From Dendrobates tinctorius (Eukaryota), in the NCBI RefSeq assembly GCF_039654945.1, contig NW_027362008.1, forward strand, positions 4,092,001 to 4,156,000: a DNA stretch of 64,000 nt, read 5' to 3'. The translations under genes were made by a program, and so were the position numbers. The notes under the pieces were generated by a model. That model was not told the DNA's origin and made no database searches. It saw only the letters and a list, made by a program, of their open reading frames with translations. This document shows positions 1-64,000 of this stretch, piece after piece (the first letter of the stretch is position 1; every line of letters starts with the position of its first letter).

Positions 1-1950
1 ACAAATACAGGATGATTTTGATTGACAAGAATTATTGCAGCTGGTGACAATCCTTGTGCTTTTGCTTTGCACACAATTCCTTTCAATTTGCAGGACCCTG
101 GTATAACCAGGCAGCTGATACAGCAATGGATTCACCAGTTGCCGTGACTTGTATACTGTATATATTTTTTGGAGAAAGATACTTAATTTGAACAATCCAT
201 TTCTATTACATATCAAATTATTCTTACAATTTAAAGACAATATTCTTATAGTAAGAAGAGATGTGTCTTTTACTTTTTGGAAAGCATGCAGTAAAAAATA
301 AAATCATTATGAGTCAGCACAAATTCTAATAATTTGAAAACAAAACTCTTGAGTGACTGAATATGATTGCCCTTTGTGCTCAAAAATATTTTACTGCCTG
401 AGTTCCCAATTCATAACAGATTCTGGTATAAAATGTCTCAATGTAAAGTCTCACTATCATTCTTGTGGGTGGCCAGGACTTCCAGCATCACCAGACCTCT
501 GACTTCACTGTGCCTTTGTTGGGAAAAAACTTGGCACTCATAGTAAAATCAGAGGATTTTATATTTGAATTTATTTAACATTGTCGGAGAAGAGATTTCT
601 ATTTCTACTTGGGTAGTTTCTGTCTTATGGGTACCCATGCAATGAAGCATAATGAGAGAGACAGACTGCTCGCTGTGTTTCCAAATCGTCTCTAAGGTTT
701 ATTGACAGTGTGAACTTTTATAGAACAAGATCAAAAAGAAATGAAGAATACATAAGAATTGGCAAAATAGAAAGGGAGGTTACACAATCGTTGACATAAA
801 AAGATAGGTTATACAATGAGTTGTCAACCACATCCTCGGACACAAGATAAAATTAAATGAAAAATGACAGGAATACAGGGGTGCTTTCCAAAAGTCAATG
901 TGCTCTAAGTTAATAGTCATGAGTTCATATTCAAAAGATATTTTTCTAAAAAGATGTTAGAACATTTCACCTCAAAAGGGAAGAGAATGCATGTCCTTCA
1001 GATTTTCTGGGAATTGTAGGAACTGACCATTAGCCATAGGACTGTGACCACATAGACAGATGATAACTGGATGTCACGACTAGTGACGAGTTCGCTGCCG
1101 AGCCAACACCTCCACGTCGACGACCACGACGATGTGGGGTGAGCGTCCCAAGTGGGGATGGAATGTGGACCCACTGAACCACAGGGGGGACCCAGGCCTA
1201 CCCAGACTAGGGAAGAGTAGCAACCGGGGTCTGTGGCAGCTGAGCATGTGGACGAGGAGGCAGAATGACATGACACCGCACACTTCAGGTATAGACATAA
1301 AGTTTACTTGAACAAGACATGGTACATAAACGAAACAGTTATGCAAGGCTCCCGGTTCCGCACATCAGGGAAGGGTACATGTCTCAGGATAACAGAAGAA
1401 AGGCAGGAGGTCATTACGGGTTGAGCAGTCCAGGGTTGTCTGGCATGGGTATACTAGGGCGGCCTCTTCCTCAGTCCTCAGGGGTAGCAAAGGGTCACCA
1501 GGAGAATATCAGACACCGACCACAAACAGACTTCAGAAAATGGCAGGCATTGTCTGACATTTCAATCACATCCATACACGCAGTACTTCTGTATTCTCCC
1601 GCTACCCGTATTTTATCAAAAAAGCTCTAATGCCAATGGACAAAAACATAAATCTTATCTATTTATAGAAACTCTTGGTTGGTTCACTATATCCTCTAAT
1701 TAGTGTCCTATCTGAGTACCCGGTTGCATACAAAAAAATTGAGCAATTATATTCACATATTGTCTTCACGTGATTTTCCCACTTCATTACAAACTCCCAC
1801 CCGGTTCCTTCCATTAGGTTTTTCCAAGGAGCAACTAACCAGAGAGTTTTATCTTAATCGCTGCTTTGAGCAACAAAAAGGCTGTTTATACACTGAGCAC
1901 ACATCATTTAGTCTCCATACATCAACAGAGCTGCTTTACAGTAGTACGAA

Positions 1951-2443
1951 ATGAATATGTTGAAGTGTATTTTCCTGGGCCCAACCAGTATGTGGGTACC
2001 AAGGTGTAATGGGGTGCTTAGGACTATGCAGCAGGGCAGACATTGCTGTCACTCTGTAAACAAAAGAGTAGGGGAGAACCGTATGAATATGGTGAAGTGT
2101 ATTTTTTTCCTGGGCCCATCCAGTATGTGGGTTCCAAGTGTTTAATGGGGTGCATATGACTATGGTATGAATCTCGGAAAAAAATATTTAAAGCTGTGAA
2201 CTAGGAGTCAGGAATGCTTCCAGGGGCGATCCCCATGAATTCCCCATTTCATTTGAGCAGTGTTTAAATCATTTTCAGATGTTTCTAGACCTTAAAATGA
2301 CCCCCTTGGGGGATCACAGCAAAAATGCTCGGGTTTCCCATAGACTTATATTGGGCTCGTTGTTCTGTCCGAGTACCCAAGTATTACAATTTGCTCGACC
2401 CGAACAACGAGTGCCCAAGCATTTTAGTGCTCGCTCATCACTA
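1951..2443. mobile_element. Truncated non-autonomous DNA transposon end, probably hAT-type (copies at 18115-18607, 29191-29683, 45353-45845, 62729-63221)
   Basis: Ends in ...gctcgctcatcacta (reverse complement TAGTGATGAGCGAGC, a TAG-initiated hAT-like TIR). It has subterminal ctcg/cgag repeats and an internal ~130-bp tandem duplication (1951-2028 vs 2083-2164). No partner TIR was seen and the left boundary is approximate. Confidence 0.5.
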
Positions 2444-2459
2444 ATCCCAGTACTTAAAA

Positions 2460-2873
2460 AGCGATACTCAATTCATGGAGAATAACTTCTCTGAAATTCA
2501 AATTAATTGGGAAAATCCAAACGGTTAAGCGATTTTGAATTTTGCTGATCTGACCCATGTTATAAAACAATCTTATCATATATTGTGCACGATGAATGCC
2601 GCATGAAGGGAAAAGTGAAAAACTGCTAAACTTGCTATTCTTGTTCATCTTACCTCACTAAAAAATTGAATTAAAAAAATCATGTATCCCAACGCTGTAC
2701 CAAAACAACTAGTTTTGTACCCAAAAACATGTCCTCATGCAGATCTGCATTCAGAAAAATAAAAAGCAATGACTCTCAATATGACAGCTATAAAAAACAT
2801 ATTGTGATTTTCTTGGGTATGAACATAATCATGTCAGCACACAGAATAAAGTGAACAAGTCAATTATACTGCT
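2460..2873. repeat. Left arm of a ~410-bp inverted repeat; the partner is 9211-9591 plus 11894-11925, split by CR1-B
   Basis: The reverse complement of 2460-2873 aligns with 9211-9591 and resumes after CR1-B (…cagagaagttattctccatgaattgagtatcgct), roughly 90% identical by eye. Confidence 0.9.
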
Positions 2874-4035
2874 TACGTTTGAAAATCCACCAGGCTTCCC
2901 TATTTTGTAATGTAACCTCCGTATCACCCCCTCTGATGGGTGTGTGTATTTTTTCAATTGCATACACCAGAAGTGTTTTCAGGTCATCTTTATGACATTC
3001 AATAAAATGTTTTGACACCTGAGATGTGTTCCTCTCCATGTTAATATTCTCTGTGTCATAGATGTGTTCCCCAATTCTTTTCTTCAGCTTGCGTTTTGTG
3101 CTTCCAACACATTTTAGATGGCAGAAGGTGCACTCCATAATATATACCAAGGTTTTAGTGCTACAATTGATAAAGGTTTTAGTAGCAAAATTCTTGCTTT
3201 CACTAGAATCTCCAAAGCTAGAGCTCTCTTTAGTGTATTTACAGGACTTAGCGCCACACTTATAAAAACCCTTGGTTTTCTGCCAATTTGTGGATTGAAT
3301 TTGAGACATATTCAAAAAACTTGGCAAAAGGCTCTGACCTAAAGATGGTGCTCTCCTAGAGTCTATTCTAAATCCTTTCCCTATAATACTATCTATATCT
3401 GGATCCTCTTTTAATACAGATAAATTATTTTGAATAATTCGTTCAATAGAGGCAAACTGGTTACTACACTGCGAGACCAATGTTACAGGAGTGACTGAAT
3501 GTTCATGTGTGTTACACTTAGGTTTGAATCGCGGTTTTTCAGCCACAATGTTTTCAGCTTTGCTTAAACTCCATTGGGTATAACCCCTTTGGGTCAATCA
3601 CTGCTTAATGTTAGAAACTTCCTGTTGATAATCTGTATTTGTGCTACAATTGCATTTCGCTCTCGTCATCCCCCCAACAGGTATACTTTTAATTGTATGT
3701 TTAGGATGATGGCTTTTTCCATGGAGTATAGCATTGCCTGCTGTGTTCTTTCTAAATTTTTGTGTTACTACAGGTTTACCTGAAATTCCTTGTAAAATCA
3801 AATAAAAAAAATCAATGCATGAAATTTTATGGCGGACCACAAATTTTAAATTCAAGGGATTGCAATTAATATAAAAATTAAAATCCTGTATGGCAGATAC
3901 ATCAGAATTCCAGGTGATAATGATATCATCTATGTATCTGCCTTACCAATAGACACAATCTTTAAATGGATTATTTACAGTATAAATATACAGCTCTTCC
4001 CACCAGCTCATTACCAAGTGAAATTAGCAAGTGAA
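2874..4035 (-). mobile_element. Decayed, 5'-truncated Penelope-like retroelement (RT C-terminus, Cys-rich linker, GIY-YIG endonuclease; Neptune-like)
   Basis: Motifs are SLAN..MSWWEE, RYIDDII, NAILHGKSHHPKH, the linker KGFYKCG..CK, and the GIY-YIG region LVYIMEC..CHLK(C/H)VGST.R.LK.RI.EH…REAWWI. There are in-frame stops (e.g. 3598-3600), and the C-terminus is cut at the inverted-repeat arm. Confidence 0.88.
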
Positions 4036-4046
4036 GTTGTCAAGCT

Positions 4047-4390
4047 ATCCACTATATGACCAAGATGAAAATCTTTCTTTGCAATTGCGGCTTGTTCCCA
4101 GTCAACTTACGTGCATCGTTATATTTTACTTTTGGTTATGTGTGTTTTTCCATGCGTTATTCATCCTGTTTTGAATGTGAATGTTTTTTCTTTGTCATCT
4201 AGGAATATTTAACACCATCCACTATATGATTAAGATATAAAGTATTTTTCGCAATTGCGGCTTGTTCCTCGCTAGTTTATGTGGATTGTTATGCAGGAGC
4301 ATATTGCTATCTGTGTTTTTTTATGCGATGTACATCTGGTTTTGAATTAAATTGTTTTCATTTTTGCTTTCACCTAGGTACTTTTACCCT
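4047..4390 (+). repeat. Diverged 2-copy tandem repeat, period 170 bp
   Basis: atccactatatga…gcaattgcggcttgttcc occurs at 4047 and 4217, and is present in U1-U4. Confidence 0.8.
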
Positions 4391-4496
4391 CCTCCGCTGA
4401 AATTGTGTTTTTAGATCTGTGTCTCTTACTATTACTCTATGACACTCAGTGTATGATAGAGAGAAATGTATTTTTCTTCTTTCTATGATTGTTATT

Positions 4497-7400
4497 GAAT
4501 CATAGAATCATAGAATCATAGAATCATAGAATCGTAGAGTTGGAAGGGACCTCCTGGGCCATCTGGTCCAACCCCCTGCTCAAAGCAGGATTCGCTAAAT
4601 CATCCCAGTCAGATGTCTGTCCAGCCTCTGTTTGAAGACTTCCATTGAAGGAGAACTCACCACTTCTCGTGGCAGCCTGTTCCACTCATTGATCACTCTA
4701 ACTGTCAAAAAGTTTTTTCTAATATCTAATCTGTGTCTCTTCCCATTCAGTTTCATCCCATTGCTTCTAGTCTTTCCTTGTGCAAATGAGAATAAAGTTG
4801 ATCCTTCTACAATGTGACAGCCCTTTAGATATTTGTAGACAGCTATTAAGTCTCCTCTCAGTCTTCTCTTTTGCAAACTAAACATTCCCAAATCCTGCAA
4901 CCTTTCCTCATAAGACAGGGATTGCAGACCGGTCACCATTCTGGTCGCTCTTTTCTGAACTTGCTCCAGTTTGTTGATGTCTTTTTTAAAATGTGGTGCC
5001 CAAAACTGGACACAATATTCCAGATGAGGTCTGACCAAAGAGGAGTAGAGGGAAATAATGACTTCACGTGATCTAGACTGTATGCTTCTGTTAATACATC
5101 CTAGAATTGCATTTGCCTTTTTTGCTGCTGCATCACACTGTTGACTCATTTTCAGTCTGTGATCTATTAGTATACCCAAGTCTTTTTCACATGTGCTGTC
5201 ACTTAGCCCTATTCCTCCCATTCTATATATGCTTTTTTCATTTTTATTGCCCAGATGTAGTACTTTGCATTTCTCCCTGTTAAAAACCATTCTGTTAGTT
5301 GCTGCCCACTTCTCCAGTTTATTTAAATCTTTTTGAATCCTCTCTCTCTCTTCTCTAGTATTAGCTATCCCTCCTAGCTTTGTGTCATCAGCAAATTTAA
5401 TCAGTTTACCCTCAATTCCTTCATCTAAATCGTTGATAAAGATGTTGAACAATACAGGGCCCAGGACAGAGCCCTGTGGTACCCCACATGAGACATTCTT
5501 CCAACTGGATGTGCAGCCATTTACGACCACTCTTTGGGTCCGATCACTAAGCCAGTTATGAATCCACCTAACAGTTGCCTTGTCCATTCCATACTTAGTC
5601 ATTTTTTCAATAAGGATTGTATGAGAGACTTTGTCAAATGCTTTGCTGAAGTCAAGATATACTATATCTACAGCATTTCCTTGATCCACCCAATCAGTGA
5701 TACCGTCATAGAAGGAAATTAAGTTAGTCTGACATGACTTATTAGTTAGAAACCCATGCTGACTCTGTTTAATCACTTCATTCTTATCCAGGTATTGACA
5801 TACAAGTTGTTTAATAATTTGTTCAAAGATCTTTCCTGGTATAGAAGTCAGACTCACCAGCCTATAGTTGCCTGGGTCCACCTTCTTCCCCTTTTTGAAG
5901 ATAGGAACAACATTTGCTCTTCTCCAGTCTTCTGGCACTTCTCCTGTTCTCCAAGAATTTTCAAAGATTATGGAGAGGGGTTCAAAAATTTCTTCTGCTA
6001 TCTCCTTCAGTACTCTGGGTTGTAATTCATCTGGACCTGGAGACTTGAATTCATTTAGGTTAGCTAACTGTTTCCTCACTATCTTTCTGTTTATAGATAT
6101 CCTGGATTCTTCTATTCCCTTAATAGGACAGTGAATAACAGTTGATGTTGCATTTCCTTTCTGAGAGAAAGCAGATGCAAAATAGGAATTTAAAAGTTCA
6201 GCCTTCTCAACATCCTGTCTTACCATTTCATCATTTTCATCCTGTAAAAATCCTATAGCATCTTTGACTTTTCTTTTACTTTTGACATATCCCCAAATTC
6301 CTTTATTATTGCTTTTGACATCTCTTGCAAGCCTCAGTTCATTTTCAGCTTTAGCTAATCTGATTTGTGCCCTGCAGGTTCTGCAGACAGCATTATATTC
6401 TTCTTTAGATATGCCTCCCTCTTTCCATTTTATAAACATTTTTTTCTTCCTTTTAGCATGTGCTTAAGTTCTGTGTTCATCCATCCTGGTTTCCTTAAAT
6501 GCTTCCTATTCTTCCCTCTTTTTGGAATTGTTAACAACTGTGCTTTGAGAATTTCATTTTTCAAGATTTCCCATCCTTCCTGGACATTTTTGTCTTTAAG
6601 GATATCCAGCCATTGGATCCCTCCAATTCTCTTTCTGAATCCCTTAAAATCTGCCTTTCTGAAATCTAACCTTGACGTCTGAGTCTTCACAGGTCTTCCA
6701 CCTCTAGTAATCCAAAATTCTAAAATAGCATGGTCGCTACCTCCTAGGGTCCCAGCCACTTTTACCTCCTCAACCATTTCCTCCCTGTTTATAAGGATTA
6801 GATCCAAGGTAGCAGTTCCCCTTGTTTTCTCCCTTACCTTTTGGAAGATAAAGTTGTCAGCAAGAGAGGATAAGAATTTCCTTGACCTGTTAGTTTTGCC
6901 TGAGAGAGATTCCCAACAAATGTCTGGATAGTTGAAATCTCCCATGACAACTATGTCATATTTTTTGGAGAACTTGGCCATCTGATGCATAAAGAGTTCA
7001 TCTATATCTTTGGCTTGCACAGGCGGCCTGTAGTAAATGCCTACAATGGTGTCCTTTCCATTGTTCTGTCCTTGTATTCTTACGCAAACAGTTTCCACAG
7101 AACTCCCAGTCTCTGAAGCTTCAATCTCTGTGCAGATATACGCGTTTCGAACATACAATGCGACACCCCCTCCTCGTTTATCAAGTCTGTTTCTTGCAAA
7201 TAAGTTGTATCCTTCTAGTCTTGTATTCCAATCATGTGTATTGTCCCACCAAGTTTCAGTGATTCCAATTACATCATATTTCTGTTCCTGTGTTAGTAGT
7301 TCCAATTCTCCTTGTTTGTTGCCCATGCTTTGTGCATTAGTATAGAAACATTTTAGTTTGTGATTGGTTTCTCTTTCTCCAATATTTTTATTAATTAGAT

Positions 7401-7513
7401 TCTTTCGTCTTTGTTCTTCCTTTCCACTTCTAATAGAAGAGTTCTCAATAGCATTTGTCAGGTGTATGGCTTTTTCTGGTCTTTTGCTTCCCTTCCCATG
7501 TTGTTCTTGAGAA
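4497..7513 (-). mobile_element. CR1 LINE copy A (ORF2 with APE endonuclease and RT; one frameshift near 6440-6455)
   Basis: The 3' tail (ATTCTATG)n is at 4497-4536. APE motifs: YTNAQS, ITETWW, GGGVALYV, MGDFN, SDH. RT motifs: [23 protein letters not shown]. The 5' boundary is approximate. Confidence 0.95.
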
Positions 7514-7549
7514 ATTGAGAATAATATAATAGAAAAAATGTCTTTGTAA

Positions 7550-7929
7550 GGCTGTGTGCCCACATTGCGCTTTTTCAGAGTTTCTGTGGTGATTTTAAAC
7601 AAGTGATTCTGCCGCTGAAATGCTTAAGAAAATCATTCCATGTTATCATAATTGATTCCGCACATGTTGTGCTAATGGTGCGTATTTTACCGCTGCGGAA
7701 TTGCTTAGCGGTAAAAAACACAGCATGTTCATTAATTTTGTGGAATCGCATGCGATTATGCATACATACACTTGTATTGCAAAAGCGCATAGGAAACCGC
7801 ATGTTAAAACATATGACAAATGCATCAAAATTGCTAAAATCTTCAAAACTGCATGCGTTTTTCCAGCTAAGGGTGTGCGTTTCTCCTCAGGAATATTCTA
7901 CTTCAAAACTGCAATGTGGGCACATAGCC
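7550..7929. mobile_element. PIF/Harbinger-type MITE, 380 bp (copies at 34788-35167 and 50950-51329)
   Basis: 19-bp TIRs GGCTGTGTGCCCACATTGC / GCAATGTGGGCACATAGCC with 1 mismatch, flanked by TAA and TGA (imperfect 3-bp TSD). No coding capacity. Confidence 0.8.
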
Positions 7930-8334
7930 TGAAAGTGGCTTTTCTATCCTCTAGTCTGAGTAGATGGCTGTAATTTTTCATTCTGACGTTTGATCCATCA
8001 TATGATTTTCACTCTGTTCCAGAGTGAAATTGTATTTTCCTCTTTGGTTGTTTTGTAAAAACTCAACATCAATTTTTACAATTATGGTTCTTTCATTTGC
8101 TCCCTTATATAAATGTATATTTCTCTACTTCTGTACTGTGGCTGCTAAGAAGAATTTACAATATACTGCGTTTGTTCTGCGCAATTGAAATACATTCTCG
8201 CCTTTATGCCATGTGGAAATCACATTCCTGATTTTAGCCATGTATGTCATCACTTGTAATTCATTTACGTTAATTAGATATGTTACTTGTCTTTCACTAG
8301 TGTTCAGCATATTAGTGCTTTCTCGAACAATGCC

Positions 8335-8382
8335 TGTTATCATGACTAAGGGTGCTGAGACACCTGAAACGCATTGATAACA
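8335..8382 (+). ncRNA. Minimal type-I hammerhead ribozyme-like motif (degenerate core) in a Penelope-type tail
   Basis: Stem I TGTTATC/GATAACA, core ATGACTA (canonical CUGANGA), stem II GGGTG/CACCT, then GAAAC-GC-ATT. An AATAAA lies ~50 nt downstream. Confidence 0.6.
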
Positions 8383-9591
8383 CAATCTTATGTACCATTC
8401 ATGCTGATATTTTATCTATTCACATCTGAGTGAATAAAGAATTTGTGTTTTCACTTCTGGATCATGGCTTTTTTGTTACATTAGCCATACCTTTCTTTTC
8501 TGGGCAATATAGATGTAAAAGTGTTTTTTAAGTATCAGTTATATTTGTCAATACACTTTTTAAGTGGAACTTATTAGCATGATTTTATAAGCACTTTTTT
8601 GCAAGAGAAATAAAGAAAACAGTAATTTTAACATTTATTTGTAGTTTAAAGTTTGTGTTATCTGATTTGCTGAAAAAATAAAGCAGTAACTGCATTCAGT
8701 AGGTCAGTACTAATATGGTGCTGGTAAATTTGTATAATCTTAATTGTTTTTTATGTTTTGTACAATATACACTTTAAAAAAAACCCATTTTTATACTGTT
8801 TTACAATTTTTTGTTAGTGGCGTGGTATGAAGATTTATTTTTGCCTGAAAATCTGTAGCTTTTGTTGTTAACAGTTTGTTGTACATGCAACTTTTTGATC
8901 ACTTTTACATTATTTAGGAGGCAAAATGAAAGAAAAACACGTAAATTCTGAATTTGTTTTAATATTTTTTTAAACCCCAGTCACTGTTGGGTATAACTGT
9001 CATGGTATCTTTATTTGGTGGACGATATCATCACCATATTCTCATAAACTTCACTTATTTATTTTTCGGTTTATTGTAGGTGACGCTGATTGAGGCTTTG
9101 TTTTTGGTTATATATGCCTTTCTAGTTATTATTTATCTCATTGTTTTGCTGGGAAGCAGAAACAAACAGCTATGAATTGGAAATAGTTGTTATTTTTATG
9201 GAGTTCGTCCAGCAGTATAATTGACATGATTACTTTATTCTGTGTGCTGATATGATTATGTTCATATCTAAGAAAATCACAATACATTTTTTATAGCTGT
9301 CACATTGTGAGTCAATGCTTTGTATTTTTCTGACTGCAGATCTGTATGAGGACATGTTTTTGGGTAACAAACTAGTTATTTTGGTATAGCATCGGGATAC
9401 ATGATTTTTTAATTCAGTTTTTTAGTGAGGTAAGATGAACAAGAATAGCAAGTTTAGCAGTTTCTCACTTTTCCCCTCATACGGCATTGATCATGCACAA
9501 TAAATGATAAGATTGTTTTATAACATGGGTCAGATCAGCAAAATTCAAAATCGCTTAACTGTTTGGATTTTCCCAATTAATTTGATTTTCA

Positions 9592-11885
9592 TAGAATCAT
9601 AGAATCATAGAATCATAGAATCGTAGAGTTGGAAGGGACCTCCTGGGCCATCTGGTCCAACCCCCTGCTCAAAGCAGGATTCGCTAAATCATCCCTGTTA
9701 GATGTCTGTCCAGCCTCTGTTTGAAGACTTCCATTGAAGGAGAACTCACCACTTCTCGTGGCAGCCTGTTCCACTCATTGATCACTCTAACTGTCAAAAA
9801 GTTTTTTCTAATATCTAATCTGTGTCTCCTCCCATTCAGCTTCATCCCATTGCTTCTAGTCTTTCCTTGTGCAAATGAGAATAAAGTTGATCCTTCTACA
9901 ATGTGACAGCCCTTTAGATATTTGTAGACAGCTATTAAGTCTCCTCTCAGTCTTCTCTTTTGCAAACTAAACATTCCCAAATCCTGCAACCTTTCCTCAT
10001 AAGACAGGGTTTGCAGACCGGTCACCATTCTGGTCGCTCTTTTCTGAACTTGCTCCAGTTTGTTGATGTCTTTTTTAAAATGTGGTGCCCAAAATTGGAC
10101 ACAATATTCCAGATGAGGTCTGACCAAAGAGGAGTAGAGGGAAATAATTACTTCACGTGATCTAGACTGTATGCTTCTGTTAATACATCCTAGAATTGCA
10201 TTTGCCTTTTTTGCTGCTGCATCACACTGTTGACTCATATTCAGTCTGTGATCTATTAGTATACCCAAGTCTTTTTCACATGTGCTGTCACTTAGCCCTA
10301 TTCCTCCCATTCTATATATGCTTTTTTCATTTTTATTGCCCAGATGTAGTACTTTGCATTTCTCCCTGTTAAAAACCATTCTGTTAGTTGCTGCCCACTT
10401 CTCCAGTTTATTTAAATCTTTTTGAATCCTCTCTCTCTCTTCTCTAGTATTAGCTATCTCTCCTAGCTTTGTGTCATCAGCAAATTTAATCAGTTTACCC
10501 TCAATTCCTTCATCTAAATCGTTGATAAAGATGTTGAACAATACAGGGCCCAGGACAGAGCCCTGTGGTACCCCACTTGAGACATTCTTCCAACTGGATG
10601 TGCAGCCATTTACGACCACTCTTTGGGTCCGATCACTAAGCCAGTTATGAATCCACCTAACAGTTGCCTTGTCCATTCCATACTTAGTCATTTTTTCAAT
10701 AAGGATTGTATGAGAGACTTTGTCAAATGCTTTGCTGAAGTCAAGATATACTATATCTACAGCATTTCCTTGATCCACCCAATCAGTGATACCGTCATAG
10801 AAGGAAATTAAATTAGTCTGACATGACTTATTATTTACAAACCCATGCTGACTCTGTTTAATCACTTCATTCTTATCCAAGTATTGACATACATGTTGTT
10901 TAATAATTTGTTCAAAGATCTTTCCTGGTATAGAAGTCAGACTCACCGGCCTATAGTTGCCTGGGTCCACCTTCTTCCCCTTTTTGAAGATAGGAACAAC
11001 ATTTGCTCTTCTCCAGTCTTCTGGCACTTCTCCTGTTCTCCAAGAATTTTCAAAGATTATGGAGAGGGGTTCAAAAATTTCTTCTGCTATCTCCTTCAGT
11101 ACTCTGGGGTGTAATTCATCTGGACCTGGAGACTTGAATTCATTTAGGTTAGCTAAGTGTTTCCTCACTATCTTTCTGTTTATAGATATCCTGGATTCTT
11201 CTATTCCCTTAATAGGACAGTGAATAACAGTTGATGTTACATTTCCTTTCTGAGAGAAAACAGATGCAAAATAGGAATTTAAAAGTTCAGCCTTCTCAAC
11301 ATCCTGTCTTACCATTTCATCATTTTCATCCTGTAAAAATCCTATAGCATCTTTGACTTTTCTTTTACTTTTGACATATCCCCAAAATCCTTTATTATTG
11401 CTTTTGACATCTCTTGCAAGTCTCAATTCATTTTCAGCTTTAGCTAATCTGATTTGTGCCCTGCAGGTTCTGCAGACAGCATTATATTCTTCTTTAGATA
11501 TGCCTCCCTCTTTCCATTTTATAAACATTTTTTTCTTCCTTTTTAGCATGTGCTTAAGTTCTGTGTTCATCCATCCTGGTTTCCTTAAATGCTTCCTATT
11601 CTTCCCTCTTTTCGGAATTGTTAACAACTGTGCTTTGAGAATTTCATTTTTCAAGATTTCCCATCCTTCCTGGACATTTTTGTCTTTAAGGATATCCAGC
11701 CATTGGATCCCTCCAATTCTCTTTCTGAATCCCTTAAAATCTGCCTTTCTGAAATCTAACGTTGACGTCTGAGTCTTCACAGGTCTTCCGCCTCTAGTTA
11801 TCCAAAATTCTAAAATAGCATGGTCGCTACCTCCTAGGGTCCCAGCCACTTTTACCTCCTCAACCATTTCCTCCCTGTTTATAAG
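9592..11885 (-). mobile_element. CR1 LINE copy B, 5'-truncated, with an open 727-aa ORF2 remainder (9684-11867)
   Basis: Octamer tail and RT motifs. An 8-bp TSD GATTTTCA sits at 9584-9591 and 11886-11893. Confidence 0.96.
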
Positions 11886-13534
11886 GATTTTCAGAGAAGT
11901 TATTCTCCATGAATTGAGTATCGCTGATTATGTACTGGAATCTCTCCATGCTGATATTTTATCGTCTTTTCAAATCTGAGTGAACAAAGAATTTGTTTTT
12001 TCACTTCATCGTTAAGCTAGGTCATCTCTTTTTTGGATTTTTTTATTCCAAGACATGGCAGTTCTGTGCTCAGAGCTTCATGATCTATTAACGCTGTGAG
12101 ATGGATTGTTTTATATGTCTAATGTAACGCAACAAGTATAAAAATGTTCTATAGTGAAGGTCAAAACTGGCTCCAGTATGTAACAATAAAAATGAAATAA
12201 TGTGAAAACTTTTTTCACTATCTCATAAAGCTAAATTTATAAACCTTTCCAAAAATAAAATGAGATTGGCGTACAAAATCAGCTCATCAAATAAGGAAAT
12301 TCTCCCATTACACTAAAAATAAATTTGCAGAAACTGGTACATGACCTGTACCCATAGCGGTGCCATTTACTTGGTGGAAAGGGATGAAATTAAAAATAAA
12401 ATCATTTGAGTCAACTAAACATCCAATAATATTTTAAAACAAACCTGTTTTGTGACTAAAAACAGATCTGCTCATCTCTCATCAGTACATGGGTGGTAGA
12501 GGTTAGCAGTGAAACAATAGAAATTTATTTAGATGCATTTACATTGTTACATGATATGAATACAGTTATGTTAGATGTCTTGTGACTACAGGTAAATGTT
12601 CTTTACCCAATTTAATAAAAAAATCTACTTACATCCAAATCTTCATTTCACTTGACCAAATAGTGAGATGTTGATGTAATTATCCTTTACAGAAACCTCT
12701 TGATTATGTCTTCTGCTGACATACTCACACTTTTTAAAGAAATGTTTTTATTCAATATTGGCTCGTTCACCCGTCTTAATCTAAAGTCACTGGATGCTTC
12801 TATAATTAAATGTAAATAAAAAAAAAGAAGGGGTTACCAGATATGAAGATGCTATGTTACTGTGAAGGTAACGTGGCAAATGCATTTCCAGTAGATGTAA
12901 AAACAGTAAATTTCTGAAGATCATAAAAAAATAGACATCAATCAGCTATAAAAAGCTAACACATGTATTACATTCTTCAATATGTTGTACACTTGGACGG
13001 GATGGCCATGGGGGTGGCATTCACGCCAAATAAGTATCAACACAATATCTCAGTGCAATTTTGCACATCTTTAATATTGTATAAAATATAGAAAGCCACT
13101 TCTACTAGATGTCTAATAGCATGTAAATGAAGACTGTTATAGCTCCCATTTACATGAATTACACACGTATATACAAGATGTATGAAGCATGGAACACCTT
13201 ACTATATTAATAAATAATACAATTGAGCAATTTGAAGCAAACACTGCACTCAGCAGCTATTAATCAGGTAATCATAGCAGTGGCCCTAACAATTTCAATA
13301 CCATGGTCATTGCATATTTTAGAAATTTTGTCTCTTGACTTCATGAAACTATCATGAAATAATACAATGAATAACATTTCTCTCTTTAGTTTACCTAATT
13401 ATCAGCACAATGGTGAATAGTATCACAGGGCACCACAGGAAATTTCTATCCCTTTGTGTTGTCCCAAACCAGCATTCTCCCTGGAGAGATTTATAAATGT
13501 CAGTTTATATGTAAATGGAGACAGTAAGTCTTGG

Positions 13535-15624: not shown

Positions 15625-15661
15625 TATGTTGAATCTATGACAAACTGCAATATGATATTTG

Positions 15662-53164: not shown

Positions 53165-54214
53165 TATTTGTCAATACACTTTTTAAGTGGAACTTATTAG
53201 CATGATTTTATAAGCACTTTTTTGCAAGAGAAATAAAGAAAACAGTAATTTTAACATTTATTTGTAGTTTAAAGTTTGTGTTATCTGATTTGCTGAAAAA
53301 ATAAAGCAGTAACTGCATTCAGTAGGTCAGTACTAATATGGTGCTGGTAAATTTGTATAATCTTAATTGTTTTTTATGTTTTGTACAATATACACTTTAA
53401 AAAAAACCCATTTTTATACTGTTTTACAATTTTTTGTTAGTGGCGTGGTATGAAGATTTATTTTTGCCTGAAAATCTGTAGCTTTTGTTGTTAACAGTTT
53501 GTTGTACATGCAACTTTTTGATCACTTTTACATTATTTAGGAGGCAAAATGAAAGAAAAACACGTAAATTCTGAATTTGTTTTAATATTTTTTTAAACCC
53601 CAGTCACTGTTGGGTATAACTGTCATGGTATCTTTATTTGGTGGACGATATCATCACCATATTCTCATAAACTTCACTTATTTATTTTTCGGTTTATTGT
53701 AGGTGACGCTGATTGAGGCTTTGTTTTTGGTTATATATGCCTTTCTAGTTATTATTTATCTCATTGTTTTGCTGGGAAGCAGAAACAAACAGCTATGAAT
53801 TGGAAATAGTTGTTATTTTTATGGAGTTCGTCCAGCAGTATAATTGACATGATTACTTTATTCTGTGTGCTGATATGATTATGTTCATATCTAAGAAAAT
53901 CACAATACATTTTTTATAGCTGTCACATTGTGAGTCAATGCTTTGTATTTTTCTGACTGCAGATCTGTATGAGGACATGTTTTTGGGTAACAAACTAGTT
54001 ATTTTGGTATAGCATCGGGATACATGATTTTTTAATTCAGTTTTTTAGTGAGGTAAGATGAACAAGAATAGCAAGTTTAGCAGTTTCTCACTTTACCCCT
54101 CATATGGCATTGATCATGCACAATAAATGATAAGATTGTTTTATAACATGGGTCAGATCAGCAAAATTCAAAATCGCTTAACTGTTTGGATTTTCCCAAT
54201 TAATTTGATTTTCA

Positions 54215-56500
54215 TAGAATCATAGAATCATAGAATCGTAGAGTTGGAAGGGACCTCCTGGGCCATCTGGTCCAACCCCCTGCTCAAAGCAGGATTCGCT
54301 AAATCATCCCTGTTAGATGTCTGTCCAGCCTCTGTTTGAAGACTTCCATTGAAGGAGAACTCACCACTTCTCGTGGCAGCCTGTTCCACTCATTGATCAC
54401 TCTAACTGTCAAAAAGTTTTTTCTAATATCTAATCTGTGTCTCCTCCCATTCAGCTTCATCCCATTGCTTCTAGTCTTTCCTTGTGCAAATGAGAATAAA
54501 GTTGATCCTTCTACAATGTGACAGCCCTTTAGATATTTGTAGACAGCTATTAAGTCTACTCTCAGTCTTCTCTTTTGCAAACTAAACATTCCCAAATCCT
54601 GCAACCTTTCCTCATAAGACAGGGTTTGCAGACCGGTCACCATTCTGGTCGCTCTTTTCTGAACTTGCTCCAGTTTGTTGATGTCTTTTTTAAAATGTGG
54701 TGCCCAAAATTGGACACAATATTCCAGATGAGGTCTGACCAAAGAGGAGTAGAGGGAAATAATTACTTCACGTGATCTAGACTGTATGCTTCTGTTAATA
54801 CATCCTAGAATTGCATTTGCCTTTTTTGCTGCTGCATCACACTGTTGACTCATATTCAGTCTGTGATCTATTAGTATACCCAAGTCTTTTTCACATGTGC
54901 TGTCACTTAGCCCTATTCCTCCCATTCTATATATGCTTTTTTCATTTTTATTGCCCAGATGTAGTACTTTGCATTTCTCCCTGTTAAAAACCATTCTGTT
55001 AGTTGCTGCCCACTTCTCCAGTTTATTTAAATCTTTTTGAATCCTCTCTCTCTCTTCTCTAGTATTAGCTATCCCTCCTAGCTTTGTGTCATCAGCAAAT
55101 TTAATCAGTTTACCCTCAATTCCTTCATCTAAATTGTTGATAAAGATGTTGAACAATACAGGGCCCAGGACAGAGCCCTGTGGTACCCCACTTGAGACAT
55201 TCTTCCAACTGGATGTGCAGCCATTTATGACCACTCTTTGGGTCCGATCACTAAGCCAGTTATGAATCCACCTAACAGTTGCCTTGTCCATTCCATACTT
55301 AGTCATTTTTTCAATAAGGATTGTATGAGAGACTTTGTCAAATGCTTTGCTGAAGTCAAGATATACTATATCTACAGCATTTCCTTGATCCACCCAATCA
55401 GTGATACCGTCATAGAAGGAAATTAAATTAGTCTGACATGACTTATTATTTACAAACCCATGCTGACTCTGTTTAATCACTTCATTCTTATCCAAGTATT
55501 GACATACATGTTGTTTAATAATTTGTTCAAAGATCTTTCCTGGTATAGAAGTCAGACTCACCGGCCTATAGTTGCCTGGGTCCACCTTCTTCCCCTTTTT
55601 GAAGATAGGAACAACATTTGCTCTTCTCCAGTCTTCTGGCACTTCTCCTGTTCTCCAAGAATTTTCAAAGATTATGGAGAGGGGTTCAAAAATTTCTTCT
55701 GCTATCTCCTTCAGTACTCTGGGGTGTAATTCATCTGGACCTGGAGACTTGAATTCATTTAGGTTAGCTAAGTGTTTCCTCACTATCTTTCTGTTTATAG
55801 ATATCCTGGATTCTTCTATTCCCTTAATAGGACAGTGAATAACAGTTGATGTTACATTTCCTTTCTGAGAGAAAACAGATGCAAAATAGGAATTTAAAAG
55901 TTCAGCCTTCTCAACATCCTGTCTTACCATTTCATCATTTTCATCCTGTAAAAATCCTATAGCATCTTTGACTTTTCTTTTACTTTTGACATATCCCCAA
56001 AATCCTTTATTATTGCTTTTGACATCTCTTGCAAGTCTCAATTCATTTTCAGCTTTAGATAATCTGATTTGTGCCCTGCAGGTTCTGCAGACAGCATTAT
56101 ATTCTTCTTTAGATATGCCTCCCTCTTTCCATTTTATAAACATTTTTTTCTTCCTTTTTAGCATGTGCTTAAGTTCTGTGTTCATCCATCCTGGTTTCCT
56201 TAAATGCTTCCTATTCTTCCCTCTTTTCGGAATTGTTAACAACTGTGCTTTGAGAATTTCATTTTTCAAGATTTCCCATCCTTCCTGGACATTTTTGTCT
56301 TTAAGGATATCCAGCCATTGGATCCCTCCAATTCTCTTTCTGAATCCCTTAAAATCTGCCTTTCTGAAATCTAACGTTGACGTCTGAGTCTTCACAGGTC
56401 TTCCGCCTCTAGTTATCCAAAATTCTAAAATAGCATGGTCGCTACCTCCTAGGGTCCCAGCCACTTTTACCTCCTCAACCATTTCCTCCCTGTTTATAAG
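54215..56500 (-). mobile_element. CR1 copy B, U4 (open 727-aa ORF at 54299-56482)
   Basis: TSD GATTTTCA at 54207-54214 and 56501-56508; the tail is one octamer shorter. Confidence 0.96.
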
Positions 56501-58588
56501 GATTTTCAGAGAAGTTATTCTCCATGAATTGAGTATCGCTGATTATGTACTGGAATCTCTCCATGCTGATATTTTATCGTCTTTTCAAATCTGAGTGAAC
56601 AAAGAATTTGTTTTTTCACTTCATCGTTAAGCTAGGTCATCTCTTTTTTGGATTTTTTTATTCCAAGACATGGCAGTTCTGTGCTCAGAGCTTCATGATC
56701 TATTAACGCTGTGAGATGGATTGTTTTATATGTCTAATGTAACGCAACAAGTATAAAAATGTTCTATAGTGAAGGTCAAAACTGGCTCCAGTATGTAACA
56801 ATAAAAATGAAATAATGTGAAAACTTTTTTCACTATCTCATAAAGCTAAATTTATAAACCTTTCCAAAAATAAAATGAGATTGGCGTACAAAATCAGCTC
56901 ATCAAATAAGGAAATTCTCCCATTACACTAAAAATAAATTTGCAGAAACTGGTACATGACCTGTACCCATAGCGGTGCCATTTACTTGGTGGAAAGGGAT
57001 GAAATTAAAAATAAAATCATTTGAGTCAACTAAACATCCAATAATATTTTAAAACAAACCTGTTTTGTGACTAAAAACAGATCTGCTCATCTCTCATCAG
57101 TACATGGGTGGTAGAGGTTAGCAGTGAAACAATAGAAATTTATTTAGATGCATTTACATTGTTACATGATATGAATACAGTTATGTTAGATGTCTTGTGA
57201 CTACAGGTAAATGTTCTTTACCCAATTTAATAAAAAAATCTACTTACATCCAAATCTTCATTTCACTTGACCAAATAGTGAGATGTTGATGTAATTATCC
57301 TTTACAGAAACCTCTTGATTATGTCTTCTGCTGACATACTCACACTTTTTAAAGAAATGTTTTTATTCAATATTGGCTCGTTCACCCGTCTTAATCTAAA
57401 GTCACTGGATGCTTCTATAATTAAATGTAAATAAAAAAAAGAAGGGGTTACCAGATATGAAGATGCTATGCTACTGTGAAGGTAACGTGGCAAATGCATT
57501 TCCAGTAGATGTAAAAACAGTAAATTTCTGAAGATCATAAAAAAATAGACATCAATCAGCTATAAAAAGCTAACACATGTATTACATTCTTCAATATGTT
57601 GTACACTTGGACGGGATGGCCATGGGGGTGGCATTCACGCCAAATAAGTATCAACACAATATCTCAGTGCAATTTTGCACATCTTTAATATTGTATAAAA
57701 TATAGAAAGCCACTTCTACTAGATGTCTAATAGCATGGAAATGAAGACTGTTATAGCCCCCATTTACATGAATTACACACGTATATACAAGATGTATGAA
57801 GCATGGAACACCTTACTATATTAATAAATAATACAATTGAGCAATTTGAAGCAAACACTGCACTCAGCAGCTATTAATCAGGTAATCATAGCAGTGGCCC
57901 TAACAATTTCAATACCATGGTCATTGCATATTTTAGAAATTTTGTCTCTTGACTTCATGAAACTATCATGAAATAATACAATGAATAACATTTCTCTCTT
58001 TAGTTTACCTAATTATCAGCACAATGGTGAATAGTATCACAGGGCACCACAGGAAATTTCTATCCCTTTGTGTTGTCCCAAACCAGCATTCTCCCTGGAG
58101 AGATTTATAAATGTCAGTTTATATGTAAATGGAGACAGTAAGTCTTGGCCAATGACAATATCCCACTAATTAACAACCCCCTGCTCTTCCCAGATATAAA
58201 CTGTTTCCTCCTCTCAGTGACATCTACTTCACTCCAGGTATTATTTGTGGTCAGAACTGGCCTCTGAGGAGCATCAAGCTGTAGACTTGTTGGTGTACAG
58301 GAGGAGTTCAGCACCGACTATCATCTCTTTCAGTAGCAGTAGACATCTTCAATCTCCATCTACAAAGGTGAATATATGATAAGTATAGCACAGCATATAG
58401 TAGATGGTATTACTGCAGATCCCTGGGGAATTATGCAATGCTGGAACATTATTACAGTGACTGCACACTATTATACAATTGTGCATTTCTAGTCGCAGTT
58501 TACACGAGGTGATTACAGTATGTTATTATGGGTCTCAAAGATGTTTCATGCTTTATTCAATGCCATATCTCATTTCATTTTATTCAGA

Positions 58589-60238
58589 ATGGCCACCAAC
58601 ATCAAGGAAGCAAGCAAGAACACGGCAAAACACCTTCTTCATCTGATATCAGAAACTTCCAAGAACCTGAAGATGATGGAAGTGACTGACCACTTTGAAC
58701 TTTTGCTAGAACTTGGGACTGGATCTTTTGGAAATGTACACATGGGAAAACACAAACATTCAGGTGAGATGATGATGATGGATGATGACTATGAAGATGA
58801 CTGAGCCATCAGGGTGGTTTTAGATGAATGTGAAAGATGAAATTGAAATCTGCTTGTACCCTGACAAACTGTACTTGTTAACAATCATTAAGTATGACCC
58901 TAGTTGTATCCTATCTACAACGTGTCATTAGTATTCTGCACCACTACCCTCTAGTCTTATGAATGCTCCTGTGTAAAGTGATTGATCAGGTTGTTTATAT
59001 GGTTTTAAAAGTGTTATGGAATATGATGAGGATGAACATTAACAATTATAATGTTTATTCAACAGGACAGACCGTGGCAATTAAAATGATGGCAAAGAAG
59101 AAGACTCCAGAAGACAACTTCTTTCTGGAATATTGCATTTCACAAACCCTCAGCATTCATCGGAACATCATATTTACTCACGACATCTTCTTCCATACCA
59201 GTAGGGATTTTGTGTTTGTTCAGGAAGTGGCACCGGCCGGAAATCTCCAGTCCATCCTTGTACCTAAAGTAAGATCTTAAGCTGTTCTCCACTTTTACAT
59301 ATTCAAGCATTATTCATACTGCTGAAGAAAAAAATTAGTGGTCTTTATTGTAGATCTGACATCTAACATTACCCTATTTCCTCAGATTTAATAAACTCAT
59401 ATTTCTGTAAGTAGCAGTATGGGACCCCCATAATTAGGCAGGTTTAGGTTGTATGAGTATGTGTGAGCTAGTAAAATCCTCTATGTGAGAGATATTTAAT
59501 TTTTAGTGGAAATCTCACATTATAGAGGATATCTGATTAATAGCAGAGTAGAACTGATGTCTGCAGGAATTATATCTACTAGTAGAAGATATCTATAAGT
59601 CTTCTGTTCTTTTATATCAGATATGTTTTCCCTTCTGCTGTTCAGCTGTGTAATCTTCTGTGTTGTCTTTTTCTTAGGTCGGCATGCAGGAGGACATGTT
59701 GAAGCGTTGTGTTCCTCAGATCGCCAGTGCTCTGGACTTTATGCATAACAGAGGAATGGTTCATCGGGATATCAAGCCGAATAATATTCTTCTGATGGAT
59801 GCAGAATGTCACTGGATAAAGCTGGCAGACTTTGGACTCACCAGGCTCCAGGGCACATTTGTTCCTTTTGTGCCCTGGTATAAACCCTACACTGCTCCAG
59901 AGCTCTGCTGCCTTAGACCAGGAGAACAGTTGTTGCTACATCCTAGTCTTGATGTCTGGGCTTTTGGTGTAGTCATTTATTATGCTCTTTCTGGACTCTT
60001 TCCTTGGCATGGGGCAAAACGCGGTGATCGAGATTATAAAGAGTTTGCCTGGTGGCAGGTTGGAAGGGATCTGTCAAAAGCTCCAAAAAAGTGGAAGAAA
60101 ATTTCAGTGGAGGCCAGAGTAATGTTCTGGGAACTGCTTCAAATAAATGCCTCTAAGAGAGGCTCGGCCATTGACATTCTAAAATTTATGCACTTGCCAT
60201 GGAAAGCCGAGGAATGTTCAGAGACCGAAGCAACCTGA
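58589..60238 (+). CDS. SBK-family kinase copy 4; exons 58589-58763, 59066-59268, 59678-60238
   Basis: Intact; the protein is identical to copy 3 in the ORF track. Confidence 0.92.
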
Positions 60239-60778
60239 TATGTTGAATCTATGACAAACTGCAATATGATATTTGTTTTTTTAATCAATAATGTCTACAA
60301 AGCAGACTGTGAACTATTGTAAATAGCTCAATAAATGAATAAAACAGACTTGAATCTTACTAAAGTTTGTCTCGAGAAAAACAGAAAAAAATATAGAAGT
60401 TACGGGTATACGAACATGGGACACTCCCAAAACATTTTTTAAGTCAGTTTTTTTCATAAAAGTAACAAAACATAAAAAGTGATATAGAAAAGGAATTGTC
60501 ATGGTATTGCTATTCACATTCTACATATTTCACATTGACATGCTTTAGCACTACAGAGTGCATCTTTTTTGTTTATTGAAAATGAAGGTAACTGCAGCTA
60601 GTTGGCTCCTGTTCACATTAGCTTGGAAGTGCCAGTCTTTTTGTCACTAAAAAAATAATACTGGTACTTTATTCCCAAATTTGATAAATATGCTGAGCCT
60701 CCATCTTGCTATTTGCACTGGATATTATGCCCATTGGTTAAGAAAACTCCCTTGGTTATACAGGACTCAAGATTTTTT

Positions 60779-63700
60779 ACAAATACAGGATGATTTTGAT
60801 TGACAAGAATTATTGCAGCTGGTGACAATCCTTGTGCTTTTGCTTTGCACACAATTCCTTTCAATTTGCAGGACCCTGGTATAACCAGGCAGCTGATACA
60901 GCAATGGATTCACCAGTTGCCGTGACTTGTATACTGTATATATTTTTTGGAGAAAGATACTTAATTTGAACAATCCATTTCTATTACATATCAAATTATT
61001 CTTACAATTTAAAGACAATATTCTTATAGTAAGAAGAGATGTGTCTTTTACTTTTTGGAAAGCATGCAGTAAAAAATAAAATCATTATGAGTCAGCACAA
61101 ATTCTAATAATTTGAAAACAAAACTCTTGAGTGACTGAATATGATTGCCCTTTGTGCTCAAAAATATTTTACTGCCTGAGTTCCCAATTCATAACAGATT
61201 CTGGTATAAAATGTCTCAATGTAAAGTCTCACTATCATTCTTGTGGGTGGCCAGGACTTCCAGCATCACCAGACCTCTGACTTCACTGTGCCTTTGTTGG
61301 GAAAAAACTTGGCACTCATAGTAAAATCAGAGGATTTTATATTTGAATTTATTTAACATTGTCGGAGAAGAGATTTCTATTTCTACTTGGGTAGTTTCTG
61401 TCTTATGGGTACCCATGCAATGAAGCATAATGAGAGAGACAGACTGCTCGCTGTGTTTCCAAATCGTCTCTAAGGTTTATTGACAGTGTGAACTTTTACA
61501 TAACAAGATCAAAAAGAAATGAAGAATACATAAGAATTGGCAAAATAGAAAGGGAGGTTACACAATCGTTGACATAAAAAGATAGGTTATACAATGAGTT
61601 GTCAACCACATCCTCGGACACAAGATAAAATTAAATGAAAAATGACAGGAATACAGGGGTGCTTTCCAAAAGTCAATGTGCTCTAAGTTAATAGTCATGA
61701 GTTCATATTCAAAAGATATTTTTCTAAAAAGATGTTAGAACATTTCACCTCAAAAGGGAAGAGAATGCATGTCCTTCAGATTTTCTGGGAATTGTAGGAA
61801 CTGACCATTAGCCATAGGACTGTGACCACATAGACAGATGATAACTGGATGTCACGACTAGTGACGAGTTCGCTGCCGAGCCAACACCTCCACGTCGACG
61901 ACCACGACGATGTGGGGTGAGCGTCCCAAGTGGGGATGGAATGTGGACCCACTGGACCACAGGGGGGACCCAGGCCTACCCAGACTAGGGAAGAGTAGCG
62001 ACCGGGGTCTGTGGCAGCTGAGCATGTGGACGAGGAGGCAGAATGACATGACACCGCACACTTCAGGTATAGACATAAAGTTTACTTGAACAAGACATGG
62101 TACATAAACGAAACAGTTATGCAAGGCTCCCGGTTCCGCACATCAGGGAAGGGTACATGTCTCAGGATAACAGAAGAAAGGCAGGAGGTCATTACGGGTT
62201 GAGCAGTCCAGGGTTGTCTGGCATGGGTATACTAGGGCGGCCTCTTCCTCAGTCCTCAGGGGTAGCAAAGGGTCACCAGGAGAATATCAGACACCGACCA
62301 CAAACAGACTTCAGAAAATGGCAGGCATTGTCTGACATTTCAATCACATCCATACACGCAGTACTTCTGTATTCTCCCGCTACCCGTATTTTATCAAAAA
62401 AGCTCTAATGCCAATGGACAAAAACATAAATCTTATCTATTTATAGAAACTCTTGGTTGGTTCACTATATCCTCTAATTAGTGTCCTATCTGAGTACCCG
62501 GTTGCATACAAAAAAATTGAGCAATTATATTCACATATTGTCTTCACGTGATTTTCCCACTTCATTACAAACTCCCACCCGGTTCCTTCCATTAGGTTTT
62601 TCCAAGGAGCAACTAACCAGAGAGTTTTATCTTAATCGCTGCTTTGAGCAACAAAAAGGCTGTTTATACACTGAGCACACATCATTTAGTCTCCATACAT
62701 CAACAGAGCTGCTTTACAGTAGTACGAAATGAATATGTTGAAGTGTATTTTCCTGGGCCCAACCAGTATGTGGGTACCAAGGTGTAATGGGGTGCATAGG
62801 ACTATGCAGCAGGGCAGACATTGCTGTCACTCTGTAAACAAAAGAGTAGGGGAGAACCGTATGAATATGGTGAAGTGTATTTTTTTCCTGGGCCCATCCA
62901 GTATGTGGGTTCCAAGTGTTTAATGGGGTGCATATGACTATGGTATGAATCTCGGAAAAAAATATTTAAAGCTGTGAACTAGGAGTCAGGAATGCTTCCA
63001 GGGGCGATCCCCATGAATTCCCCATTTCATTTGAGCAGTGTTTAAATCATTTTCAGATGTTTCTAGACCTTAAAATGACCCCCTTGGGGGATCACAGCAA
63101 AAATGCTCGGGTTTCCCATAGACTTATATTGGGCTCGTTGTTCTGTCCGAGTACCCAAGTATTACAATTTGCTCGACCCGAACAACGAGTGCCCAAGCAT
63201 TTTAGTGCTCGCTCATCACTAATCCCAGTACTTAAAAAGCGATACTCAATTCATGGAGAATAACTTCTTTGAAATTCAAATTAATTGGGAAAATCCAAAC
63301 GGTTAAGCGATTTTGAATTTTGCTGATCTGACCCATGTTATAAAACAATCTTATCATATATTGTGCACGATGAATGCCGCATGAAGGGAAAAGTGAAAAA
63401 CTGCTAAACTTGCTATTCTTGTTCATCTTACCTCACTAAAAAATTGAATTAAAAAAATCATGTATCCCAACGCTGTACCAAAACAACTAGTTTTGTACCC
63501 AAAAACATGTCCTCATGCAGATCTGCATTCAGAAAAATAAAAAGCAATGACTCTCAATATGACAGCTATAAAAAACATATTGTGATTTTCTTGGGTATGA
63601 ACATAATCATGTCAGCACACAGAATAAAGTGAACAAGTCAATTATACTGCTTACGTTTGAAAATCCACCAGGCTTCCCTATTTTGTAATGTAACCTCCGT

Positions 63701-64000
63701 ATCACCCCCTCTGATGGGTGTGTGTATTTTTTCAATTGCATACACCAGAAGTGTTTTCAGGTCATCTTTATGACATTCAATAAAATGTTTTGACACCTGA
63801 GATGTGTTCCTTTCCATGTTAATATTCTCTGTGTCATAGATGTGTTCCCCAATTCTTTTCTTCAGCTTGCGTTTTGTGCTTCCAACATGTTTTAGATGGC
63901 AGAAGGTGCACTCCATAATATATACCAAGGTTTTAGTGCTACAATTGATAAAGGTTTTAGTAGCAAAATTCTTGCTTTCACTAGAATCTCCAAAGCTAGA
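60779..64000 (+). repeat. Tandem array unit U5 (partial, runs off the window)
   Basis: Colinear with 1-3222 at offset +60778. Confidence 0.95.
63652..64000 (-). mobile_element. Penelope-like element, U5 copy (partial, GIY-YIG end)
   Basis: ORF 63638-63928. Confidence 0.85.

Follow-up and report, generated by a model that had tools for sequence, protein, structure and literature searches.

Ampliconic gene families consist of many copies, tandem or palindromic in order, that are more than 99% identical to each other. An example of such organisation is the human TSPY array of the Y chromosome, whose head-to-tail units of tens of kilobases (kb) contain one intact gene apiece, are more than 99% identical and are homogenised by unequal exchange. 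Protein kinase genes can also be multi-copy, as in the MARK-related Smok/Tcr family of the mouse t-complex. Lineage-specific tandem families, shaped by birth-and-death or concerted evolution, are characterised by paralogs that group by species, by divergent ends of the gene series and by unit-length variants produced through recombination. The SBK kinases of mammals are organised differently from such arrays: SBK2 and SBK3 are single-copy and selectively expressed in the heart, as stated in passages of two reports (PMC12217965, PMC7438927). The genes considered here encode an SBK-like kinase of the dyeing poison frog, Dendrobates tinctorius (assembly GCA_039654945.1). They form a tandem array on a 7.24-megabase scaffold and were analysed in a stretch of 64,000 nucleotides, positions 4,092,001 to 4,156,000 of contig NW_027362008.1, which is called the window below.

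The window is very probably the middle of a real D. tinctorius array of about 250 kb and 17–18 genes, which was grown and homogenised by unequal crossing-over and carries active-looking SBK paralogs. Its units, like those of TSPY, contain one intact gene each and lie head to tail at more than 99% identity, and with many such copies the array is ampliconic in the sense given above. The gene family is unrelated to TSPY, and the likeness concerns the organisation. Smok had been named as a precedent for amplification through conflict in the first-pass annotation of the window, which was made by reading the letters. The parallel stands for the multi-copy organisation of protein kinase genes, but not for the kinase family, as the named non-amphibian matches of the array kinase are all SBK; Smok is set apart by these names rather than by direct sequence comparison. 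With SBK1, SBK2 and SBK3, the array kinase shares the helix preceding the kinase domain and the catalytic motifs, and it differs from them in lacking a tail, in the replaced Ser and Thr of the activation-loop 'SGT' stretch, in its copy number and in its fast evolution. From the lineage-specific tandem families there is no difference in kind, since the same species-wise paralogs, divergent series ends and recombinational length variants are found. The D. tinctorius array is a new example and not a new mechanism, the formation of arrays being textbook knowledge. The locus is also made less singular by the multi-copy state of the family in many anurans and in axolotl, and by the presence of its genes in RefSeq, where they are already annotated as "SBK1-like".

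Tandem units and extent of the array

The D. tinctorius genome was assembled with hifiasm from PacBio HiFi reads longer than 10 kb, for which the DNA had been sheared to about 19 kb (PMC11152451). The genome paper makes no mention of SBK or kinases (PMC11152451), and no paper on frog SBK1-like arrays was found in the literature. The boundaries of the units were determined by self-blastn of the 64-kb window and by MAFFT alignment of the units, which place the unit starts at 1, 16165, 27241, 43403 and 60779. All units lie head to tail on the plus strand, and the basic unit is 16.16 kb long. Unit 1 (1..16164; 16,164 base pairs, bp) has the full-length form, and unit 3 (27241..43402) measures 16,162 bp. 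Unit 2 (16165..27240; 11,076 bp) is a short form without 5.09 kb, recognised by a gap in the unit alignment and by direct repeats of the transposon CR1, and unit 4 (43403..60778; 17,376 bp) is the full form with the insertion of a Tc1-type transposon. The partial fifth unit (60779..64000; 3222 bp) is ended by the window edge and is 99.7% identical to positions 1-3222. The four complete near-identical units of 11–17 kb and the partial fifth described in the first-pass annotation are confirmed in this way. Its further claim, that the array continues off both ends, holds as well: the repeat reaches both window edges, the same protein (RefSeq protein P0001) is encoded at nine places on the scaffold, which also encodes eight variant proteins.

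The substitution divergence between complete units is 0.27–0.46% in pairwise comparison, with an average of about 0.33%, as expected from recent homogenisation or from the recent amplification that had been proposed. Pairs that include the short partial fifth unit fall between 0.22 and 0.68%. The four complete units differ at 94 sites, most of which are private to one unit. These variants show a star-like pattern with no neighbour effect in the pairwise distances, and a two-unit higher-order repeat was rejected on these grounds. CpG transitions account for 20 of the 94 variants, and small indels occupy just 4 columns of the unit alignment, in addition to one 8-column gap in unit 4. Errors of HiFi reads are mostly homopolymer indels, and the profile of the unit variants fits real paralogous differences rather than such errors.

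Each complete unit carries one kinase gene on the plus strand. The gene is divided into three exons by GT-AG introns, the first in phase 1 and the second in phase 0, and its 312 codons are followed by a TGA stop. The open frame is intact in 4/4 copies, and the encoded proteins differ by at most 2 amino acids (aa), in agreement with the earlier reading of one intact 312-aa kinase per complete unit. Copy 1 (13975..15624; exons 13975-14149, 14452-14654 and 15064-15624) encodes the N35 variant, identical to P0040 (XP_073418314), and has an AATAAA polyadenylation signal near 15718, about 95 bp beyond the stop. Copy 2 (25051..26700; exons 25051-25225, 25528-25730 and 26140-26700) encodes the H35/Q244 variant, identical to P0043 (XP_073418315). 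Copy 3 (41213..42862; exons 41213-41387, 41690-41892 and 42302-42862) and copy 4 (58589..60238; exons 58589-58763, 59066-59268 and 59678-60238) both encode P0001, the commonest protein of the array. The correspondence of the copies to P0040, P0043 and P0001 was checked exon by exon. The variation among the four copies, at 4 of the 939 coding sites, comprises two synonymous changes (A2, Y227) and two replacements (N35H, R244Q).

The extent of the array is given by the RefSeq series XP_073418306 to XP_073418323, which corresponds to about 17–18 genes over roughly 250 kb. The members with the lowest and highest numbers depart most from P0001: XP_073418306 differs at 9 aa, XP_073418307 is shortened to 275 aa, XP_073418321 differs at 7 aa, including a change of the HRD motif to HQD, XP_073418322 at 7 aa and XP_073418323 at 4 aa. 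If the accession order equals the genomic order, the most divergent members would lie at both ends of the array, and the central copies would be identical or one residue apart. Divergent ends around a uniform centre would be the pattern that homogenisation through unequal exchange usually leaves.

The kinase and its family

A search with exon 3 led to a RefSeq protein of 312 aa that matches it at 100% identity, 'serine/threonine-protein kinase SBK1-like [Dendrobates tinctorius]'. This protein is P0001, on which the full-length protein searches, the alignment and the fold were based. Pfam assigns exon 3 to PF00069 (Pkinase, E=2.3e-27), and the motifs GTGSFG, VAIK, LEY, HRDIKPNN, DFG and APE are present in 4/4 copies. 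In an alignment of 44 SBK-family proteins, the residues G43/G45/G48, K65, E80, R156, D157, K159, N162, D177-F178-G179 and P200-E201 are invariant. The AlphaFold2 model of P0001, built with the same 44-protein alignment, reaches a mean predicted local distance difference test (pLDDT) score of 93.4 and a predicted template modelling (pTM) score of 0.91, and consists of a helix at residues 2-25 followed by the canonical kinase fold. Its best solved structural match is the kinase domain of CHK1; no SBK structure was present among the 60 best solved matches, the top ones of which are only general CAMK-like kinases. The array kinase should be catalytically active, because all the catalytic residues are present.

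The activation segment of the array kinase reads DFGLTRLQGTFVPFVPWYKPYTAPE. The VSGT of the SBK1 activation loop, which contains the Ser and Thr of the 'SGT' stretch, is replaced by VPWY (VPWYK) in Dendrobates and Ranitomeya. Because these two residues are replaced, the array kinase is probably independent of activation-loop phosphorylation. Such independence is known from CHK1, which is active without phosphorylation of its loop.

The array protein can be described as a 'minimal' Ser/Thr kinase, composed of the N-terminal helix and the kinase domain and ending about 12 residues past the domain. In SBK1 (P0096), the kinase domain is followed by a C-terminal tail of about 75 residues; the SBK1 tail is proline-rich and binds SH3 domains. 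In Bufo, Eleutherodactylus, Rana, Ascaphus and Ambystoma, longer relatives of the array kinase have a conserved tail, about 45 aa long and ending in SLTIGAEVEIT, before which the 312-aa dendrobatid forms end. A hidden fourth exon encoding the tail was considered and rejected, as a tblastn search of the kinase gene and the 3 kb past its stop gave no remnant of tail-coding sequence. In a genomic Logan contig of a ranoid-like frog (L001:97-769), sequence matching the tail, as in the long form of Nanorana, directly follows exon 3 in another frame. The tail-less short forms may arise where the kinase domain ends, through a frameshift or a stop.

Outside amphibians, the closest relatives of the array kinase are SBK1, SBK2 and SBK3, at 35-45% identity, and every non-amphibian match is named SBK1, SBK2 or SBK3. 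A maximum-likelihood tree of 73 proteins, with support given as the Shimodaira–Hasegawa-like approximate likelihood ratio test (SH-aLRT), places the array kinase inside the SBK radiation, so that both the best matches and the phylogeny agree with the SBK membership assigned in the first-pass annotation. The copies of D. tinctorius are united in one clade (SH-aLRT 99), which is sister to a Ranitomeya clade where the copies of R. variabilis and R. imitator fall into separate groups and one R. variabilis copy is unplaced. The next branches beyond Ranitomeya are Phyllobates and then Anomaloglossus. The anuran members together constitute one clade (99), sister to the sequences of Ambystoma (98). 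The true SBK1 proteins are located elsewhere in the tree, as is an SBK2-like group that includes the Xenopus proteins, and bird SBK3 is nearer. The array kinase is not in the SBK1 clade, and a separate, highly conserved SBK1 is present in Ranitomeya, Phyllobates and Anomaloglossus. By its position in the tree, the array kinase is a member of the SBK family other than SBK1, belonging to a paralog family of frogs and salamanders nearer to SBK3. No member of this paralog family from Xenopus or another pipid turned up in the protein search.

Many anurans, and axolotl as well, possess multiple copies of the family, and in Phyllobates tandem neighbour copies lie 8.2 kb apart. The paralogs of Phyllobates, Bufo and Pelobates cluster by species or genus, and such clusters point to concerted evolution or birth-and-death. 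The evolutionary rate separates the family from true SBK1, which forms a single 90% cluster from Ascaphus to the dendrobatids and is more than 93% conserved across frogs. Between Ranitomeya and Phyllobates, true SBK1 is 99.5% identical and the array family 84.8%; between Ranitomeya and Ascaphus, the values are 93.9% and 54.9%. The array-family protein thus changes at about 30 times the rate of true SBK1, and yet all the catalytic residues are kept across the family. The average ratio of nonsynonymous to synonymous change (dN/dS) between species was estimated from protein identities and the divergence times of the genome paper, and not by a codon model (PMC11152451). It is roughly 0.4-0.5 with the figures of that paper and near 1 with a slower rate, so that the family average would lie at about 0.4-1.3, depending on the assumed rate. 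Taken together, the family appears functional but weakly constrained, and it seems to evolve by birth-and-death combined with concerted evolution.

Transposons and length variants of the unit

Recognisable transposon sequence makes up at least 43% of the unit, and the description of the units as transposon-rich is therefore appropriate. The long open reading frames (ORFs) other than the kinase encode CR1 reverse transcriptase and endonuclease, a Tc1 transposase and a protein of GIY-YIG type. The kinase had also been proposed as the sole host gene of the unit, and this is upheld by RefSeq, where the 10 kb around each of the nine P0001-identical copies are free of other gene calls. A hidden non-coding RNA cargo was likewise discarded, with no Rfam family at the gathering score and no tRNA in the unit.

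Two copies of the CR1 long interspersed nuclear element (LINE) are present on the minus strand of the full units. In unit 1, CR1a (4500..7602, with an approximate 5′ limit) was identified by Pfam (RVT_1, Exo_endo_phos) and by its repeats. It contains reverse transcriptase and endonuclease ORFs, and its 3′ end carries an 8-bp microsatellite, visible as CATAGAAT repeats on the plus strand. CR1b (9589..11889), found by self-blastn, Pfam and repeats, is 5′-truncated and likewise ends in an 8-bp microsatellite. Its 727-aa reverse transcriptase ORF is open in the full units (9684-11867, 36922-39105 and 54299-56482); the coding sequence of CR1a is broken into two or three ORFs. CR1a (4500-6799) and CR1b (9589-11889) are direct repeats, 98.8% identical and spaced by 5089 bp. 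Unit 2 lacks exactly the CR1a–CR1b interval of 5089 bp, and is therefore read as the product of CR1a × CR1b recombination. The deletion junction is contained in a chimeric CR1 ORF of 727 aa (20760-22943), the frame of which stays open. A gene spacing of 11,075 bp also occurs elsewhere in the array between two genes that both encode P0001. This pair cannot be window copies 1 and 2, and the short form itself must therefore have propagated.

The second structural variant is the Tc1-type transposon of 1.2 kb (51942..53166, minus strand), delimited by the alignment gap and present in unit 4 only. It contains an intact transposase ORF of 346 aa (51976-53016) with the Pfam domains HTH_Tnp_Tc3_2 and DDE_3. 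As it occupies only one of the four units, it was inserted after the last homogenisation, and its family is probably still active.

Two further elements are shared by the units. The first is a 245-aa ORF of GIY-YIG nuclease type (2860..3597, minus strand), which occurs in every unit and was recognised by protein-atlas features (0.97 to GIY-YIG clusters); it has no Pfam match. It is presumably derived from a Penelope element, as the GIY-YIG domain is typical of Penelope-like retroelements. The second is an inverted repeat of about 400 bp, one per unit, with the left arm at 2487..2873 and the partner arm at 9211-9596; the arms are 88–95% complementary. Within 160 bp of the left arm in unit 3 (29956-30116), there are 10 private substitutions, all of them transversions, and this patch abolishes the stop of the GIY-YIG ORF, which extends to 269 aa instead of 245. 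Gene conversion from the partner arm was considered as the source of the patch, but only 5/10 of its variants match the inverted partner arm.

The surroundings of the kinase gene contain two segments, 18609-18689 and 13392-13439, that are homologous to upstream exons of the Ranitomeya imitator gene models P0052 and P0054. The segment at 18609-18689 sits in an arm of the inverted repeat, which in a full unit precedes the kinase by about 11 kb, and the segment at 13392-13439 has no GT donor in D. tinctorius. The kinase transcription unit may start in the transposon-derived repeat, in which case CR1 and the GIY-YIG element would be antisense intronic passengers. Logan contigs of relatives (L001-L003) were considered as a sign of transcription and set aside: they contain no spliced exon junction and therefore look genomic, with L002 keeping the intron between exons 2 and 3, and L001 and L003 containing exon 3 only.

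Origin of the array and competing explanations

The growth and homogenisation of the array by unequal crossing-over are well supported. Misalignment of units followed by unequal crossing-over would multiply the 16.16-kb unit and make its copies uniform. Recombination through the internal repeats would produce length variants, with CR1a × CR1b exchange deleting 5.09 kb, and later transposon insertions such as Tc1 would tag single units. The last common sequence of the units would date to roughly 0.5-2 million years ago. An alternative, slower substitution rate is about 1e-9 per site per year. At that rate, the divergence of about 0.33% corresponds to about 1.7 million years. The rate given in the genome paper is 2.5e-9 per site per year (PMC11152451).

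Several observations weigh against this account of a young array of active kinases. First, the age of the units depends on assumed substitution rates, and the transition:transversion ratio of the unit variants is only about 1. Point mutations of vertebrates are expected to show a ratio above approximately 1. Second, variation within the window amounts to 4/939 coding sites against 94/~16,200 sites for the whole unit; the kinase coding sequence shows no higher conservation than other parts of the unit, and recent purifying selection is therefore not demonstrated. Third, outside the window, P0042 has HQD in place of HRD (R156Q) and P0041 is reduced to 275 aa, both with accessions near the ends of the RefSeq series. 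Some copies of the array may be decaying, and the array genes could be silent.

The forces behind the amplification can be explained in different ways. The likeliest of these, to which we give slightly less than an even chance, considers the array a neutral by-product of a transposon-rich region prone to unequal crossing-over. The kinase would be a passenger there, and redundancy would relax the constraint, so that copies are born and decay. The direct CR1 repeats within the unit demonstrably recombine, coding constraint is undetectable within the window, and the whole protein evolves quickly. The distribution of altered copies agrees with such decay, as the proteins with 4-9 aa changes, one of them with HRD changed to HQD, and the shortened protein hold the lowest and highest accession numbers. 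The difficulty of this explanation lies in the long-term record of the family. The catalytic residues have been invariant since before the frog–salamander split, and some copies must therefore always have been under selection, while the multi-copy state recurs in many lineages.

That recurrence, with its species-specific clades, would agree with selection for the amplification itself. Copy number would then be maintained for the dose of the kinase in one tissue or stage, such as germ cells, the oocyte or the early embryo, or because the locus is party to a genetic conflict, for example transmission distortion. Selection of this kind, which was the interpretation of the first-pass annotation, is possible but rather unlikely. 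The frame is intact and identical or nearly identical in the four window copies and in nine array copies, yet with a divergence of 0.3%, frames would be expected to stay intact by chance. Fast protein change around an invariant catalytic core also agrees with selection, and is often seen in genes of reproduction or conflict; nevertheless, the rough dN/dS of about 0.4-1.3 fits relaxed constraint equally well, and no paper was found that ties frog SBK-like genes to the germline or to drive. A more specific and quite improbable version regards the SBK family of frogs and salamanders, apparently without Xenopus, as an arms-race kinase. Its repeated amplification into species-specific arrays, near-neutral surface and frozen core would be explained by, for example, competition among gametes or embryos, transmission distortion or interaction with pathogens, with D. 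tinctorius as the latest burst.

The inflation of one or two real copies by HiFi mis-assembly or unpurged haplotigs hardly deserves credence: although very similar repeats are hard to assemble, the window has three structural forms and unit-private substitutions instead of homopolymer indels, 17–18 genes with nine distinct proteins are impossible from two haplotypes, the reads, longer than 10 kb and derived from fragments of about 19 kb, are close to the unit length (PMC11152451), and related frogs also have tandem copies.

Where an intact enzyme gene lies in a young tandem array, gene dosage, concerted evolution and perhaps genetic conflict can be studied as in a natural experiment. The array of D. 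tinctorius is cleanly resolved, with datable structural variants in the form of the CR1 × CR1 deletion and the Tc1 insertion. The family appears unstudied, maybe because Xenopus, the main amphibian model, showed no member in the search. If its copies are not expressed in germ cells or embryos, the array would be a further by-product of a 6-Gb genome rich in transposons; if they are, it would provide a tractable vertebrate case of kinase amplification.

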